Part shown: positions 614 to 49,100 of the stretch, piece after piece
Layout of the letters: each line of letters begins with the position of its first letter
How positions within the stretch are numbered: the stretch's first letter is position 1
NCBI RefSeq assembly: GCF_052425735.1
Contig: NC_135763.1
Span: 10,230,001-10,294,000 of the forward strand
From: Oculina patagonica
Taxonomy: Eukaryota
DNA length: 64,000 nucleotides
Direction: 5' to 3'
Notes under the pieces: model-generated
The model's input: the letters and a program-made list of their open reading frames with translations, nothing else
Database searches by the model: none
What the model was told of the DNA's origin: nothing
Program-made: the position numbers and the translations under genes

Positions 614-2625
614 ATGACGACAGAGATTCGAAGAAAGGTACAGTACGTTTTTAAACCCATTAATTCTTATGCAAGTGTGATTTTATCATCAAATTCTATA
701 TCATTCAATATCAAAACGGCGCCAGGCAAGCAGCAGGTGATTACAATCAAGAAATCACAATGAGAGATTGTCGTTTTGTTGTGTCAACAAGTGTTTAAAA
801 GTTACTCTGAAAAATGTAGTGTATTGAAAACATTTCAAGCTTTTTGAAATTTCCTGTTGCGAGGTAGATAAAAGCAACAGCTCAGGGGAAAAAAACCGTC
901 CGCTTTTAACGCCGACAGGCAAAAGACCAGAACCTGTTGCTTTTGCAGACAGCAGGCGGAGAAGATAATTTCCACTTTGATTCTGTAAAACTGGCCATCT
1001 TATGGTCTCTTCTTTGAACAGCGAGTCAAAGAAGGCCTCTTATTCTCAAGGAATCAAGTTGGATATACATGACTGAAGGTTTTACACCTTAGTAACCTGT
1101 CACGGCTTTGAGTGTCTTTGTATTGTACTAGCAGGGTTCAAATGGATGAATGGCGGAAAGTCACTAGTGCGTGATAAATGAGTGTTTACTGTCTCTTTCT
1201 GTTGTTGTTTACTGCAAGCTGTTTGTGCTGCTTGATTATATTTCAAACATTTTGCAACTAAAGTCACTAAAGTTTTGGTAAATAATAAAGATGGTAAATT
1301 TCAAGCTCGGTGATAAATAGTGAAGAAATTATTTAACATGACACGAGCGTGGGACAAAGAAAAATTCTGAGTCCCTGACGGGAATCGAACCCATGGCCTC
1401 CCAGATACCGGTTGGGCGCTCTAACCAACTGAGCTACGAGAGATTCATTGTGAGCTGAGCCATTTACTAGGTTTAGTCATGTTGAATAATTTCTACACTA
1501 TTTATCACCGAGCTTGAAATTTACCATCTTTATTATTCACCACACATTTGATGATTTCGACATTGCTGATCCTAGCAGTATGCAGGACGCGTGTCACATA
1601 TCACTAGTAAATGGCCTAGCTCACAACGAGTCTCTCGTAGCTCAGTTGGCTAGAGCGCCCAACCGGTATCTGGGAGACCATGGGTTCGATTTCCGTCGGG
1701 GACTCAGATTTTTTCTTTGTCCCACGCTCGTGTCATGTTGAATAATTTCTTCACTAAAGTTTTGGTGTTTCCGTAAGTTTCAGAAGACTACTTATCTTTT
1801 TGGTAAACATTAAAACGGGAAAAATCAGGTTCGCCGATTGTCTCCCCAGAGTAAAACACCTGTACTGGGACAGGGGAGGTGGGGGTGGGGGTGTGGAACT
1901 CTCCAGCGTATACTGAGTCAGTATCTCCCTTGTCCACCCTAGACGCATGATTAAACTTGCCGTCAAAAGGGAGGGAGATTGAGGATGATTTAATTTTAGG
2001 TGACCATACTATAGCCTGTAGCGCATACAGTATCCCACTACTATAGTCACATGGAAGACTCCTTTGACACTTCTTTTATTTGTTTGTAGGTTCTTAACCA
2101 CTCTATTACGGTTCTCTTAATAATAGCTGGTTTCTTAATGCTTGCGTCTTCAAGCCACCAAAGTGACAAAGAGGTACTGTATCGGCCTGTTCAATGCATT
2201 ATTATAATGAGTTATTCCTTTTTTTCGGATGCCGACATAACATCTTGATACCAACTTGCGAAGTGTGACATCGAAACCCCGGGGGGGGGTCACTTCCTGT
2301 TTGGCATGTCATGGTTTTTCGTAATGAAAGGGGGCCCGCAGCAAAAGGTAAACGAAAGGGGTGCCCCGCAAAATAGAATGAAAGGGAAGGGGTTGGACCC
2401 GGGGCGGAGCCCCCGAAAAAAACTTTGAGTATCCTCCGGGGCATCGAAATTAGCCTGTCTTTCGGTTATTTTTTTTAGGAGGAAAGTGAAGCTGAGCTTG
2501 AGCACAAAGCCCGGGTCTGGATTAATGCTCTTCTTGATCGTGTGGCCCAAAAACACGACCAGGAAAGGAAAGACCTTCAGAAAAGCCTTGAAAGCGGCGA
2601 AATCCAGATCGAGACGGAAGCCTAA
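614..2625 (+). CDS. Truncated myophilin/calponin-homology-derived small protein with signal-peptide/TM-like exon (84 aa, 3 coding exons)
   Basis: Exons 614-637 (MTTEIRRK|gtacag), 2090-2173 (VLNHSITVLLIIAGFLMLASSSHQSDKE|gtactg) and 2479-2625 (EESEAELEHKARVWINALLDRVAQKHDQERKDLQKSLESGEIQIETEA*). All phase 0, with strong polypyrimidine-AG acceptors. Exon 1 resembles MSAELARK| of the neighbouring myophilins, and exon 3 aligns ungapped to their exon 2. AATAAA at about 2860. Confidence 0.7.
1280..1756 (+). mobile_element. tRNA-headed tandem-type retroelement (256-bp unit) with inverted 5' segment and 16-bp flanking direct repeat
   Basis: Forward unit 1476-1756 has A-box TAGCTCAGTTGG, B-box GGTTCGATTTCC and a T-run. 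Inverted copy at about 1281-1473. TCACTAAAGTTTTGGT occurs at 1264-1279 and 1751-1766. Confidence 0.85.
2278..2441. mobile_element. Short non-autonomous DNA element with CCCGGG-type termini
   Basis: Termini CCCGGGGG...ACTT and GAGTATCCTCCGGGG. Similar termini at about 48-415, 22852-23401 and 31352-31735. Confidence 0.45.
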
Positions 2626-43105: not shown

Positions 43106-46100
43106 TTAGCTGGGTGACTCTAATGGCACAAGGTCTGTGTGGTGTGACTTGACTCGTTGAAGTAGATGTTGCCCAACAGGGACAAATTGCCCTTCCCACA
43201 TGTCTCGTAACACATCTGGCAGGCTGGACTCCATGGAGTCTAATTCACTATGGTCAAGAACTATGTCTTCATCTGAAACAGAATTCAGTAGAAATCAATG
43301 ACTTCAGGTTAAACTGATGTTGTTCTTCCTCATCCCCAGTTAACCATGATTGTTGGGGGAATGCTTGTTAATTATTGAGGAAAGCAGGGGGGTGGGGTGT
43401 GGAGATATTGTGGTTTGAGCTTACTCCCAGTCCCCCCCCCCCCCCGCCAGCCTGTGGAGGAGGCAGGATTATGTTTAATATTTACTTGTCCTCGTGATGG
43501 TTAAACTTTCTCTCTGCAATATAATAAATTATAGCCCCTTCTTAACTTCCCAGGCAAAGCCAAGATATCAGTGGCAAAATTTATTACATTGTTTCTTCAC
43601 TACTTTTATCACTTGTCACTAAAAGATCCCAAATCCTTTTTAAAAATCCTTCAAACAGTAGTATATCAAGGATCAGGGTCTAACAGTCAAAACACAAAAA
43701 TCTTGTCATTTGTCCTACCCAGATATTGTGTAAGAATATCCTTTAACTCTAATGTTTCTTGATCACCAAATGTCTCTGAAGAGCTGGTTATCTTGTCACT
43801 GAAAATTGACAGATCATTAGCACTTGTACAAACAAAAGAAGTAAGTACTAAATTTGAGATACCAAACAAAATCAAGTTTGTAAGTGAAGCTTTTGGAGCA
43901 ATCACATTGCTTTTCTCAAGTGATAACGCAGTCAAAGCTCTCTTAAGCGGACACCCTCGGGACGCGAAAAAAGTGTCCGTAACTGGAGCTGGCCGCTTAT
44001 GAGAATGGTTCTCGTAAGCGGCCACAAGAGGTGTAGGGGATAAATGGCCGCTTAAGGGAGCTTGCCCTGTTAAAAATAACCAGACGGACGTGGATGGCAA
44101 CAAAACAAGCATTGAAATATGGTACTGTAATTACTTTAAAATCATTGTAACGAACGGCGATGTGAAGTTGATTGATAAACATAAGATGCAGAAGTTGTTA
44201 ATAGGATTTTCTTTGGGGTGTCCGCTTACGGGAGCTTAAAAACAAAGAAAAAGTCTAAGTCGTAATCTCTGAAAGTGTCCGTGGCTGCTTACCGGAATGT
44301 CCGCTTACGAGAATGTAAAAATACAGAGTTTGTATGGGAGTTAAAACAGGGTTTCAAATTAGGCGCGCCGTAAGTAGAGCTGTCCACTTACGAGAGTGTC
44401 CGTTAAAAGAGCTTTGACTGTATTGATGCAAGTGATAATTAAATAACCCACCTATAGTTCCACAGTATCTGGCAGACCATACTTGACAACTGCCAATCAT
44501 GTTTACCAAAGTCACGCAAAACATCCACCAGTCTGATAAGAGAAAAACAGTTGCCTTAGAAGAAGAGATACCATAAATAATCTAAGGGTCTTGAGGGGGG
44601 GGGGGGGGCATTAAATAGATATGAGGCATTTACCATATTGGAAAGAGGCATTTGTTACAATTTTACTCTATGGAGCTTTTCCTTGGTTTCGAAGCAATCC
44701 TTGGGGGCATTTATTAGATATGAGGCGTTTTTTGAGAGAGGGCCTTTATTAGATCATTTACGGTACCAGTAATATTAATAGTTACCGTATTTATTCGATT
44801 TAGCGCCCAACCTCGAATAAGCGCCCACCTCGAATAAGCGCCCACCCTGTACGTAGGAAAAATTAATAAGCGCCCAGCCTCGAATAACCGCCCACCTCCA
44901 CCCCTCTAAATTGAGGGCACAAGAGGAATTTTGATTATTTTTGAAGTTGAGATTAAAATTGACCAACTACTATTAAATGACTATCCCGAAAACCGAGTTT
45001 TTTTAGCTTTTTTACTGAAACTTTAAATGAATACTTAATTTCAGCTTTCGTACACCTTCACATTAAGTTATTACAATTGTTGTTTTCTTGCAAAATAAAC
45101 GTGCTACTTGCTTAAAATGGTGAAAATTTAATAAGCGCCCAGCCTCGAATAAGCGCCCACCTCGAATAAGTGCCCACCCTCAAGGTCCAAAAATTTAATA
45201 AGCGCCCAGGGCGGTAAATCGAATAAATACGGTATTACAAATAATTAGTATTGAAAGACCCCTATGACTTACTTTTTAATTCCATCCTCTTCTTTTAACT
45301 TTGGTTTTATTTGCTCATCTATCATCAAGTTGATAAGCACACCACATGCTGTGTAAACAGTTTCTCTCTCTCCAGCGTCCAACAAAGCAATCATGATCTC
45401 ATCAACTAAGAGTCAAACAATATAAAGATCATAAAAGAAAGGAACCCTAATTGGAAAGAACTGTAATCAAAATACATAATTCACAACAAAAACAACAACA
45501 TGTAGTGACAATTCTGTCAAAAACCATTCAAGAGACATCAACCTGGGAGGTGTTTTACTTTTTCTACTTATTAACCTAGTATTAAGAAACTAGTTTTAAA
45601 ATAAAAATAAAAATAACTGAGATCAAAAATTAACTGCAACATATACATGGATCCTTTGAGAGAAACATCATTAGACATGAATTTGTCAAATCAATCTTAG
45701 ATATCTCTTCTATAGTGTGGGGAAAAATAAATGCATAAATTAAAAGGTACTTCTGTTCTATCACTTTCATCTAATTTTAAAAATCAACTTTTACCTTTGT
45801 GTTCAGCCAGTAAAGCCCTAACTTCCTTGGATCTTGAAAAGTTTCCAAATACACGGCTGGCTTCCACCATTGCATCCATGTTTTCTGGCATTAGCAAGGA
45901 AATTAACACTGCAACGAAATTTATAATAATAAATTATAAACAAAGCCAGGAAGAAAACTTACTATTAATTATTAATCAATGAATCAATAACACCTAAAAT
46001 TTAATATGTATTCCTAAATTTTAGGTGTTATTGACTCAGAATACTTAGTGCTACCACGAGTACTCAATAATTATGAAGGTGCCATAACATGCTACAGTAA

Positions 46101-49100
46101 TATGTAACTTACTACACAGCCTCAATAAGCATTGTTTTATGCTGGCCGAGCAAAATGAGTGGAAAACACTTTTCTCACACACAGTTTGAGAGTCTGGGTA
46201 CTAGTTTAGAATCATCCTCAGTCATGACAAATAAATAAAAAAAGAGACACTGTGAATCCTGGCCACTGAAAAAAATTCAGTGGCTCAGGTGGGACTCGAA
46301 CCCACAACCTTCGGGTTGCATGACCACTGCTCTACCATCTGAGCTACAGAGCCACAGATGGGAACAGCGCGTGAGTGAATCACATGTGAACAGGAGTTTC
46401 CTGCAACAAACATGTGAAACATGTATTACATGTGAAGAACAAATAAATGCGGATGAACAGTGTTTCGATTCTAGTTTAGAATCATCCTCAGTCATGACAA
46501 ATAAATGAAATGAGACACTGTGAATCCTGGCCACTGAAAAAAAATCAGTGGCTCAGGTGGGACTCGAACCCACAACCTTCGGGTTGCATGACCACTGCTC
46601 TACCATCTGAGCTACAGAGCCACAGATGGGAACAGCGCGTGAGTGAATCACATGTGAACAGGAGTTTCCTGCAACAAACATGTGAAACATGTATTACATG
46701 TGAAGAACAAATAAATGCGGATGAACAGTGTTTCGATTCTAGTTTAGAATCATCCTCAGTCATGACAAATAAATGAAATGAGACACTGTGAATCCTGGCC
46801 ACTGAAAAAAATTCAGTGGCTCAGGTGGGACTCGAACCCACGACCTTCGGGTTGCATGACCACATCAGTGGCCAGGATTCACAGTGTCTCATTTCATTTA
46901 TTTGTCTGGGTGCTAGTGTGTGGAGAAGATAAGTCACATGGCCAGTGATAAGTTTATGTAATGTTTAAGAAATGAGCAGCAGTGTTTATTAGCAAGCGCA
47001 ACTTGATAAAACAAGAACTGTAAATTTATTGAACGCTTAAAAATCTTCTGATGTAGATCAACTCATTCTTGCCCTAATATTTAGATTTGGGTTTATTTTG
47101 GCCTAGAAAATTGGACTTGAAGTTTAGCCGTGTCTTTATCAGATATACCGTAAAGACACTCATTGAACATTAATTTCTTTTGTATTTTCTTTATGAATTA
47201 TTAATGAGTTTTTTAAGTACAAACTGAGTACCGTAAAATTCCGGTTATAAGCCCTGGGCTTATACAACTTCGTAAGGGGTTTTGGGTGGGCTTATAAGCG
47301 GAGGGGCTTATATCCGGGAGGGCTTATAAGCAGAATAAAAAAACATTTCGAAACGATTGTCTTAGTTCAGCTTTTTCACCTTCATTGGCCACAATCCTGG
47401 CTGAGTGGTTTAGCTTGGCATGGCTCATAGTCATGTGCAAAAAATGGTATTTTCTCCATGATTATTTTACTTGGGATGGACAAATAATATTATCCCAGAG
47501 GAGAAGCCACAATACTCCTTGTTGCTATAGAAACCAAACTGTAAGTACCAGATGTGTTGGCCACTTGGCTTGATAGTGAAACTTATACAACTTATACTTA
47601 TACTTATTAGTATACAACTTTAACTTACTTTCAGTAATCTCAACTTGTCTCTGTTGTACAACACTGTCGGCGTCATTGTAAAATGACAGGTTATTAAGAG
47701 TCGCAACTGTATTCAGGACAAGTTCTTCGCTGTTGTTTGCATCTTTAACATCTGCAATAATCCACAAAAAAGAAACTCATTAAAAGTGCTCAGCTTGTCA
47801 TGTCCCAAAAGGGATCAACATAATTTTTCTAATAATTTTCATACTGGTACACAGTCAACCATTCAGGTGACAAGAAAAACTCATTAGGAGGGGGGCATTG
47901 GGGCCTGTAAGAAACCAAAAAACCGCACAAAAAATCATGCAAAACCGATAAACCAAAGTGAATTTCGATCAAAACCGAAAACGGAACATAACATGCCAAA
48001 TTCCAAAGCTCTGACTAACCTTAATTGGTACCCCGTGATTTGAAAGAAGGAAGAAAGGAATTTTTTAAAGAGTCTTGACAACTAACTTGCATTTTAAACA
48101 TAAAAGCAGGTTTTCTCTCTACCAGCATGATCTCAGAGAAACAGTACTGTAAACCAAATAGGAAAAGCCGAAAACCACAGCAAATACTAAATCCGAAAAA
48201 AAAAACGCTAGTATTTTTGCTGGAAACCAAAAACCGCATGCTAATAGAAGAAAAACCCGAAAACCAAAGAAGACACCAAAACCGAAAAACCACCGTTTTT
48301 TGTTGCGAAAACTGAAAAACCGATCTAAAAAAAGGCCAAAACCGAGAAACCAAAAACCCCAAAGTCCCCCTCCATTAGTGACGAAACTAACCTCTAAAGA
48401 AATCTAAGAAAAACAGTAAGGAACAGCCTTGTGACTGAACAAATAGAAGACATAAATTCTTGTTTGAACCATTCATGTGTTTTCCTGCACTACTGACAGT
48501 TTTATTGAACTGAGCTGTGAACTTAGTCTTGAAACTCAGTTATATGATTACAGTCCAACCTCGTTATTTCGAACTGTCAGGGGAAAGCGAAAATAGTTTG
48601 AAATAGCACACAATAAAAGACTGAAGTGCAAATTCAAGGGAAATTGGTTTTAGTTTGAAATAACAGGGAATTTGAAATAACCAAGTTAGAATTAGCGGGG
48701 TCCAACTGTAGTTAACTGTCTGCAAAAATATTAACTGCTACAAAATTGACATTAACACAAGAACCTGTGAATTTGTTTCTATGTCTGCTGTGTCATTGGT
48801 ACTTTTTAATTAGCAGCAGCTACACTAGTTATTTAAGTTTATAGCTTACCAAGAATCTGGATTAACAGGTTCACTAATGCTTCATTGGCAGCCATGCCCG
48901 CACCAGCTTCTGGACTGATTGAAAGGTTGGCAATCACTCTGATGGCCTGCAAGTTATTTAAAGTAACACCAAAAATTATGCATGAGAAATCCGCCTCTAG
49001 AGATGTCCCTGATGACGGTGGGTTGGTTTAAGAGAACAATGGAACAAGCAATGGGAGCAATACTCAGGGTTTTCAATAGGAATCAGTGTAGGCGGCAAAA

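Follow-up and report, generated by a model that had tools for sequence, protein, structure and literature searches.

A putative Penelope-dependent, tRNA-bearing retroelement with a predicted type III hammerhead in the coral Oculina patagonica

INTRODUCTION

How does a noncoding repeat that carries both a tRNA-like module and a hammerhead ribozyme motif move within an animal genome? The question is raised by an intron of the coral Oculina patagonica, in which one 2.5-unit insertion of a 268-bp repeat lies on the minus strand at 46192-46917 of a 64,000-nt stretch of DNA (NCBI RefSeq assembly GCF_052425735.1, contig NC_135763.1, positions 10,230,001 to 10,294,000; here called the window, in whose numbering coordinates are given). 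An earlier note, made from the letters of the window, regarded the locus as a young, “tRNA-headed” retrozyme that spreads through a probably circular RNA. What moves animal retrozymes has so far been inferred only. We searched the 529-Mb genome for relatives of the repeat and compared the anatomy of their insertions. The explanation that best accounts for the findings as a whole is a low-copy, nonautonomous retroelement that bears a hammerhead and a tRNA-like gene and is inserted by a Penelope-like element (PLE); we put its probability at about 0.7.

RESULTS AND DISCUSSION

Structure of the insertion and of its family

Tandem Repeats Finder (TRF) places 2.5 copies of period 268, with 98% matches, at 46201-46863, in agreement with the minus-strand tandem array that the earlier note had described. 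When unit positions are numbered from the 5' end of the tRNA-like module (position 1 is 46621, minus strand), the array starts at position 27 and stops at position 150, inside stem II of the hammerhead, so that both of its ends are indeed mid-unit. Of 242 positions compared between units 1 and 2, 2 are different (99.2% identity), and the GC content of the unit is 43.7%. The short inverted piece reported at the 5' end of the array was found as well: its outward-facing 3' end belongs to 3'-end class 1 (see below), its 5' end lies exactly at TCAGTGG (position 85), and one extra base separates it from unit 1. The flanking 14-bp duplication with one mismatch was likewise recovered. The last 3 nt of its copy at 46904-46917 overlap the end of the inverted piece (microhomology), and an ACTAG within the duplication could be element sequence, in which case the true target duplication would be 9 nt long. 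Because the duplication encloses both the inverted piece and the whole array, the locus represents one insertion event and not a local duplication of DNA.

The family to which this copy belongs is small. In the genome, BLAST yielded at least 90 pieces from 209 candidates, the 3' half of the hammerhead was matched 30 times when up to 3 mismatches were allowed (reversed control, 0), and the 3'-terminal 39-mer of positions 86-124 occurs 55 times, 23 of them perfect; the family thus comprises about 55 or more insertions, or about 55-110 copies. A covariance model built from the copies recovered further, older lineages. The anatomy is drawn from about 47 distinct mapped insertions, with 46 direct copies for counts of 5' ends. 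A direct copy begins at a variable 5' position, reads on to 268, and resumes at 1 until its 3' end, and the 3' ends fall in two zones about 25 nt apart, at ~121-128 in hammerhead loop 1 (class 1) and at ~141-166, from stem II to GAAA (class 2). About 25 of the 47 insertions have an inverted, 5'-truncated partner joined head-to-head, with its outward 3' end in the same two zones. The duplicated target sequences measure 8-14 bp (e.g., AAGGGAAATA, TAACTACGCTA, ACGACGCAATAGGT, AATAGAGG, and TTATGTTGAT), and none of the mapped copies has a poly(A) or simple-repeat tail. The tRNA-like module sits 50-75 nt upstream of the insertion 3' end. Copies are almost always 1.3 units long or shorter, and mini-insertions of 41-73 nt also exist (loci L102, L103, and L104). 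The window copy is the only multi-unit copy among the mapped insertions; we saw in the genome neither a second array of two or more units nor a second locus at which two intact hammerheads stand in tandem.

Metagenome contigs L072 and L073 contain a 77%-identical family of the same architecture: it has a CAGAAATGGTG duplication and an inverted partner, and its 3' ends fall in the same two zones. Contigs of four runs show the family in organisms A to D, with few hammerhead variants (G12 to A, a minority, and C126 to U). The attribute “young” may be kept at most for the window copy; it does not suit the family, whose bodies are 84-92% alike. Two loci in which only the 3' half of the hammerhead matched (L066 and L067) were considered as a different context or PLE and then rejected, being old paralogous copies in a duplicated intron.

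Insertion anatomy points to a Penelope-like element

PLE insertions are known to form partial tandems (pseudo-long terminal repeats, pseudo-LTRs), to carry an inverted, 5'-truncated copy on the 5' side, and to have an optional tail of 30-40 bp at one end (PMC8557442). In vitro, both DNA strands are cut and extended by a PLE protein, which initiates reverse transcription inside the RNA at two neighboring sites; this accounts for the tail (PMC11167929). The coral family and its metagenome relative share this set of features: more than one unit, an inverted 5' copy, and an optional tail from two start sites. The Penelope-type anatomy that the earlier note had seen in one copy (partial tandem and 5' inversion) extends to the whole family, which also has two 3'-end classes. 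The hammerhead itself has three traits of metazoan PLE hammerheads, in which helix II has 7-8 bp, helix I has 4-5 bp, and a nucleotide 5' of stem II is unpaired (PMC4209133); in the window, helix II has 7 bp, helix I has 4 bp, and one base before helix II is unpaired. Some canonical hammerheads likewise have an unpaired base here (PMC4209133, citing De la Pena and Flores 2001). Judged by insertion anatomy and not by homology, dependence on a PLE is most likely, and we consider it likely that the family is a PLE-type retroelement with a complete, constrained hammerhead.

In the window copy, unit 3 is the first-synthesized partial unit. Its loop 1 (46214-46240), which adjoins the class 1 start zone of reverse transcription, contains a cluster of changes (CTCTTTTTTTATTT versus CTCATTTCATTT) and is 2 nt longer; these changes may result from slippage at initiation and not from later mutation.

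The genome is rich in PLEs: a scan for the GIY-YIG endonuclease domain gave 860 candidates, of which 150 were scored; all of these were above the cut-off, and many lie in inverted pairs. Nine matches of equal score lie in stop-free frames of 1371 amino acids (G000 C3:1323294, C3:16302769, C5:25727195, C6:17966754, C8:9959455, and 4 more), and a tenth match, scored alike, occupies a frame of 657 amino acids. This suggests that a GIY-YIG-encoding element was recently active.

5' ends of the copies and the template RNA

The pseudo-tRNA of the earlier note is well founded: it is matched by the Rfam tRNA model (Table 1), ARAGORN reads it as tRNA-Ala(TGC), and its A and B boxes are intact, with mismatches in the acceptor and anticodon stems. 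Direct reading of the sequence also bears out the hairpin that encloses a run of 7 or 8 T's. The hairpin shares sequence with the tRNA 3' end, and the T-run within it is a terminator-like signal for RNA polymerase III (Pol III); a run of 5 to 8 T's occurs 4 nt past the tRNA in all lineages, the metagenome relative included. Because this run lies directly 3' of the tRNA, Pol III should end before it reaches the hammerhead and the start sites of reverse transcription. Moreover, about 3 of the 46 direct copies start near the tRNA 5' end (positions 267-6). The term “tRNA-headed” therefore has to be given up, and the family is not the set of monomers starting at the tRNA 5' end by which the earlier note would have recognized a normal short interspersed nuclear element (SINE).

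Full-length copies begin just after the T-run, at the 3' arm of the hairpin (position 85). The 5' ends of 13 of the 46 direct copies are at positions 81-93 (p = 2e-7), and several, bounded by target duplications, are exactly at (T)CAGTGG (L021, L026, L028, L103, and the inverted piece of the window). A further 8 direct copies start at 102-114 (p = 0.0015), and 4 or 5 start at 127-130, which makes them almost exactly one unit long. Within 107-111, where ends of the cDNA cluster, the exact position of the predicted cut (109) is represented only by L058, and three ends at 107 contain two templated bases upstream of the cut, indicating that those RNAs were uncut. We therefore rejected the ends at 107-114 as proof of cleavage in vivo, since those at 107 span the cut and could equally well have arisen by stalling at the base of helix III. 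An apparent cluster at 231-234 was also set aside, as it is partly an alignment artefact of a 12-nt indel common in the family. Nine copies extend upstream of position 85, the window copy by two more units, and these require a longer template.

In the mechanism that we propose, the unit has four parts: a tRNA-like Pol III gene with a T-run terminator, the hairpin, a PLE-style type III hammerhead, and the body. A PLE reverse transcriptase/GIY-YIG endonuclease would insert the element by target-primed reverse transcription from both nicked strands, with internal starts of reverse transcription in the two hammerhead zones, loop 1 (~121-128) and stem II (~141-166). The usual template would be a linear RNA of ~310-340 nt, just over one unit, that starts at position 85 (TCAGTGG); positions 85-125/150 (41-66 nt) would then be present at both template ends, in a miniature pseudo-LTR arrangement, and initiation in the 5' repeat would give rise to mini-insertions such as L102, L103, and L104. 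The hammerhead region would double as the start site of reverse transcription, and part of its conservation may serve the reverse transcriptase. Candidates for the longer template of the window copy are strand transfer between the terminal repeats, a read-through or multimeric transcript, and a circle.

Among sequencing runs recorded as RNA, none exceeded 1/20 of the sampled words (three coral metatranscriptome runs, 5%). Contig joints that go back by 268 were rejected as evidence of circles, since the junction 268 to 1 is present in every genomic copy, and joints that skip ~210 have sides of 22-25 nt and look like paths of the assembly graph.

The hammerhead motif and its constraint

The hammerhead (positions 95-170) reads GGAU-UC-ACAGUGU-C / UCAU-(14 nt)-AUGA / CUGAGGA-U / GAUUCUA-AAC-UAGAAUC / GAAA / ACACUGU-UC-AUCC. 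Every part of the complete type III hammerhead that the earlier note described is present at 46457-46521 and 46725-46789, and both full motifs satisfy all hammerhead sequence rules (C3-A9, G12-A14, A15.1-U16.1, GUC, and G10.1-C11.1), with an additional U separating A9 from G10.1. The helix lengths are 4+2 bp (I), 7 bp (II), and 7(+4) bp (III). Loops close helices I and II and leave helix III open, which makes the topology type III. Our own type III descriptor calls for CUGANGA (one inserted base being allowed), a helix II with GAAA after it, helix I, UH, and helix III; in the window, it matches these two sites only. Set to 4/4/5 bp, it finds no match in 38.4 Mb of dinucleotide-preserving shuffles, the observed 4/7/7 bp being stricter; at 3/3/3 bp, it finds 4 matches per 12.8 Mb of shuffles. 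When the whole linear cleaved monomer is folded, the minimum-energy structure retains helices I, II, and III, the last of which encloses the remaining 190 nt, and the circular fold of the unit has a z score of -6.5 relative to shuffles. The main-lineage hammerhead is probably cleavage competent, and we give the copies in the window a somewhat better than even chance of activity in vitro. As modeled, helix III is a stable 7-bp helix, so that the motif should act as a monomer.

Within the same insertions, positions 1-178 are 95-98% conserved and the body (positions 178-268), a fast-evolving stretch of ~100 nt, is 84-92% conserved. For comparisons among lineages, we aligned 37 copies, including divergent ones; because the alignment was fitted to the model, its counts are biased towards the structure. 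In this alignment, bases agree with the column consensus at a mean identity of 0.93 for the core and 0.90-0.91 for helices II and III, as compared with 0.70-0.73 for the flanks; 87% of the cells pair, and 14 pairs are changed on both sides. At pair 1.1-2.1, 25 copies have U-A and 9 have G-C; the seventh pair of helix III reads A-U in the main lineage and U-A in L072; and the base at position 17 (C in 17 copies, A in 13, U in 3, and G in 2, out of 35) is nearly always a permitted one. Old single copies have decayed (CUAAGGA, GUAUC, and GAAA to AAAA at CpG). The comparison of stem covariation among genomic copies, which the earlier note had proposed, gave a score of 0.179, compared with 0.116 in shuffles (0/500) and 0.02-0.04 for slid controls. 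The covariation is modest and above the controls, and on this model-fitted alignment it lends moderate support to the hammerhead structure; we infer that the hammerhead evolves under constraint at the level of the family.

TABLE 1 Features of the insertion in the window
Feature	Coordinates	Strand	Details
Target-site duplication, upstream copy on the element strand	46904-46917		ACTAGCACCCAGAC on minus strand; 14 nt, one mismatch to 46192-46205
Inverted 5'-truncated copy, unit positions 85-126	46865-46906	+	100% identity over 42 nt, opposite strand
Unit 1, partial, positions 27-268	46622-46863	-	Truncated tRNA-like module, hairpin, complete hammerhead, body
tRNA-like module, unit 1, 5'-truncated	46817-46863	-	
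Hairpin, further copy	46799-46821	-	CCACTGA-T7/8-TCAGTGG
Hammerhead motif 1	46720-46795 (46725-46789)	-	Identical to motif 2; predicted cut 46782/46781
Unit 2, complete 268 bp, positions 1-268	46354-46621	-	
tRNA-like module, unit 2 (positions 1-73)	46549-46621	-	A and B boxes; Rfam tRNA 54 bits, E 3.8e-10
Hairpin, unit 2, positions 69-91	46531-46553	-	GCCACTGA-T8-TCAGTGGC, read from sequence; as RNA GCCACUGA-U7/8-UCAGUGGC
Hammerhead motif 2, type III topology	46452-46527 (46457-46521)	-	With outer GGAU/AUCC extension; predicted cut 46514/46513
Unit 3, partial, positions 1-150	46201-46353	-	Ends at CTAG in hammerhead loop 2/stem II (3'-end class 2, “tail”)
tRNA-like module, unit 3	46281-46353	-	Rfam tRNA 54 bits (gathering 29)
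Hairpin, further copy	46263-46285	-	CCACTGA-T7/8-TCAGTGG
Third hammerhead copy	46201-46259	-	Truncated after 5' strand of stem II; hence unable to fold or cut
Target-site duplication, downstream copy	46192-46205		ACTAGTACCCAGAC on minus strand

Alternative explanations

Several observations weigh against a PLE-inserted element with a constrained hammerhead. The earlier note's check with Rfam came out negative: Hammerhead_3, Hammerhead_1, and the other hammerhead models give no match at E ≤ 10 (3 kb; 106 nt). Likewise, when RF00008 was run over the genome, with 68 of 79,782 candidates scored, the 268-bp family was not among the matches listed, which are other hammerheads of a type I retrozyme family with a period of 244. 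We do not take this silence as absence of a hammerhead, because all the hand-checkable rules are satisfied and the shuffles yield no match. As for the covariation, the cells are not independent, and many of the changes may trace to few events. Conservation of stem II, both loops, and the bulged U is almost complete and equals that of the core, so that recognition by a reverse transcriptase could explain part of the constraint. Defective lineages have multiplied, namely, those with an inactivating G17 (L074, L082, and L090, at G000 C14:14962350, C1:16089095, and C11:4138220), with U3 (L072 and L073), and with a helix I of 2 bp (L055, L069, L075, L079, L080, and L093); since core-defective lineages spread, cleavage cannot be obligatory for transposition. 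The G17 lineage is an older one (GUGUG/GCAU...AUGC CUGAGGA) in which cleavage is predicted to be blocked, yet it has at least 3 copies. The end at position 85 could reflect a transcription start, a (protein) roadblock, or a reverse transcriptase that falls off at the U-run; TCAGT at this position resembles an initiator element. Finally, searches with the 39-mer, a 97-nt BLAST query, and the covariance model, in which PLE ends were not compared, found no autonomous PLE that shares the 3' region; all the matches are family members, and none is near a GIY-YIG match.

How well do other explanations fare? It is very improbable that the element is an ordinary tRNA-derived SINE moved by a long interspersed nuclear element (LINE), with a hammerhead likeness that arose by chance and a tandem that arose by duplication at the DNA level. 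The A and B boxes are intact, and standard annotation would say SINE or pseudo-tRNA, but a SINE2 copy begins at its tRNA-like head, is read by Pol III over its whole length, and has a single 3' end with a LINE-type A-rich or simple-repeat tail. The coral copies do not start at the tRNA, which is followed by a T7-8 run, and they end without an A-rich or microsatellite tail in two zones inside the hammerhead. Copies of more than one unit, inverted partners, and a target duplication that encloses array and inverted piece as one insertion do not fit a SINE either; the motif is absent from 38.4 Mb of shuffles and persists, with compensatory changes, in the 77%-identical family. On this point the earlier note, which preferred a retroelement insertion to a plain SINE, is supported by the family anatomy. 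Its central proposal, a 268-nt circular RNA, is harder to sustain. Two hammerhead cuts would excise the unit, and the ligated circle would be the usual template for rolling-circle reverse transcription, as in an animal retrozyme of type III. A template without ends is favored by the 2.5 seamless units of the window copy, whose two intact tandem hammerheads could themselves release a monomer; the unit fold is stable, as in published retrozyme circles (PMC7229834), direct-copy 5' ends are concentrated within ~45 nt beyond one full turn, and the copies starting at 127-130 are almost exactly of unit length. However, only 1 of about 47 insertions is multi-unit, and the sharp pile-up at position 85 (81-93) is what run-off at a linear 5' end would give; stops at the U-run are rarer in the first pass than in the second (about 6 versus 13), which argues against a simple stop signal on a circle. 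The three ends at 107 come from uncut RNAs, L058 alone is exactly at 109, the dead-core G17 and U3 lineages spread, and hammerhead mutants of the one PLE tested in vitro inserted normally (PMC11167929). A circle as the usual template is thus possible but doubtful.

Another explanation, that the element is PLE-mobilized and its hammerhead-like fold is now only a structure for reverse transcriptase binding and initiation, a relic of PLE terminal repeats without cleavage in vivo, appears improbable to us. Both 3'-end zones lie inside the motif, conservation of the loops, bulged U, and stem II equals that of the core, dead-core lineages proliferated, and the Rfam models are silent; in addition, PLE hammerheads cleave poorly in vitro (PMC4209133) and are dispensable for insertion there (PMC11167929). 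Nevertheless, the main lineage retains all catalytic nucleotides, and position 17 is limited to allowed bases in 33 of 35 copies. Compensatory changes occur in helices I and III, outside the start sites, and the stable 7-bp helix III, unlike the minimal hammerheads of PLEs, should permit action as a monomer. Insertion by a PLE of an element whose main-lineage hammerhead is probably still competent remains our preferred explanation.

Other repeats in the window

A second, unrelated tRNA-bearing repeat, a head-to-head insertion, lies at 1264-1767. It contains tRNA-Thr(GGT)-like modules at 1369-1444 (minus strand) and 1630-1705 (plus strand), each followed by a T6 run, and has a perfect 16-bp flanking duplication (TCACTAAAGTTTTGGT). 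Its inverted arm is ~40 nt longer than the direct arm, a PLE-like one-sided “tail,” and the type III descriptor finds no hammerhead in it. A partial tandem of the same repeat family is present at G000:C6:10298700-10299700 (L071). This second, hammerhead-less family with the same scars suggests a wider class of PLE-dependent SINE-like elements. More speculatively, corals might harbor an as yet undescribed class of such elements with a complete Pol III tRNA-like gene, in one lineage of which the PLE hammerhead has become a monomerically active type III ribozyme, with tandem loci releasing a circularizing 268-nt RNA that is copied by rolling circle; we consider this scheme unlikely, and if true, it would be the first animal type III retrozyme.

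A near-perfect, A+T-rich palindromic hairpin of ~64 nt lies at 45976-46040, 150 bp downstream of the insertion. It has weak matches to models of plant and animal microRNA precursors (≤31.7 bits, far below the gathering scores) and looks like a foldback of the type of miniature inverted-repeat transposable elements. Short tandem repeats on either side of the region, at 45130-45178 (17 bp, 2.8 copies) and 47288-47335 (16 bp, 3 copies), are both unrelated to the element.

Comparison with known systems and significance

The coral family joins in one element the insertion signature of PLEs, a PLE-style hammerhead whose helix III is open and stable, and a tRNA-like Pol III gene. We found no description of a PLE-dependent tRNA-bearing element in the literature searched, in which metazoan genomic hammerheads are described as type I, as are those of animal retrozymes (PMC7229834) and of PLEs (PMC4209133). 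An ordinary annotation would label PLE-dependent SINE-like elements SINEs or pseudo-tRNAs. With its start sites inside the ribozyme, the element offers a compact substrate of ~310 nt for asking what a PLE reverse transcriptase recognizes and whether hammerhead cleavage helps or hinders transposition.

Among known systems, plant LTR retrozymes also combine a type III hammerhead with a nonautonomous retroelement, but they have LTRs of ~350 bp, a primer-binding site, a polypurine tract, 4-bp duplications, and a dependence on Gypsy elements (PMC4918200), none of which is found in the coral family. The minimal hammerheads of PLE pseudo-LTRs share with it the partial tandem, the inverted 5' copy, the optional tail, and start sites adjoining the hammerhead (PMC4209133, PMC8557442, PMC11167929). 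They differ in having the type I order and almost no helix III and are thought to act as dimers (PMC4209133), whereas the coral element has a stable 7-bp open helix III, no open reading frame, and, in the searches made with its 3' region, no detectable similarity to a resident PLE.

Metazoan non-LTR retrozymes, including that of Acropora millepora (225/245 nt), are likewise low-GC, noncoding repeats of 150-450 bp with a hammerhead in each repeat, target duplications of more than 4 bp, and a very stable predicted fold (PMC7229834), and they too are suspected to depend on PLEs (bioRxiv 10.64898/2026.07.22.740005). However, they form long tandems (up to 62-mers) with a type I hammerhead in each unit, have a G+C-rich helix II, and lack a tRNA (PMC7229834); the coral family has a type III hammerhead, an A+U-rich helix II of 7 bp with a bulged U, and a tRNA-like gene, and tandems are nearly absent, copies rarely exceeding 1.3 units. 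A known type I retrozyme family is present in the same genome, with canonical 38-nt hammerheads (CUGAUGAGGCCCAGAAGGCCGAAAC) every 244 bp (G000 C1:45331669-45332194, C3:15868385-15868666, and others; L009 and L010), which fits the 225/245 nt of Acropora.

By analogy, the coral element would work most like Sm-alpha of schistosomes. As summarized in PMC6765202 and PMC2770079, Sm-alpha and Sj-alpha are short noncoding retroposons that combine a tRNA-like Pol III promoter with a hammerhead, as here; in Sm-alpha, also as here, the promoter is near the 3' end of the cleaved monomer, and copies longer than one unit are needed for propagation. The same papers, citing Ferbeyre et al. 1998 and Laha et al. 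2000, give Sm-alpha a type I hammerhead and tens of thousands of copies and hold that it is transcribed by Pol III, whereas the coral family has a type III hammerhead, ~55-110 copies, a strong T-run past the tRNA, and a cnidarian host.

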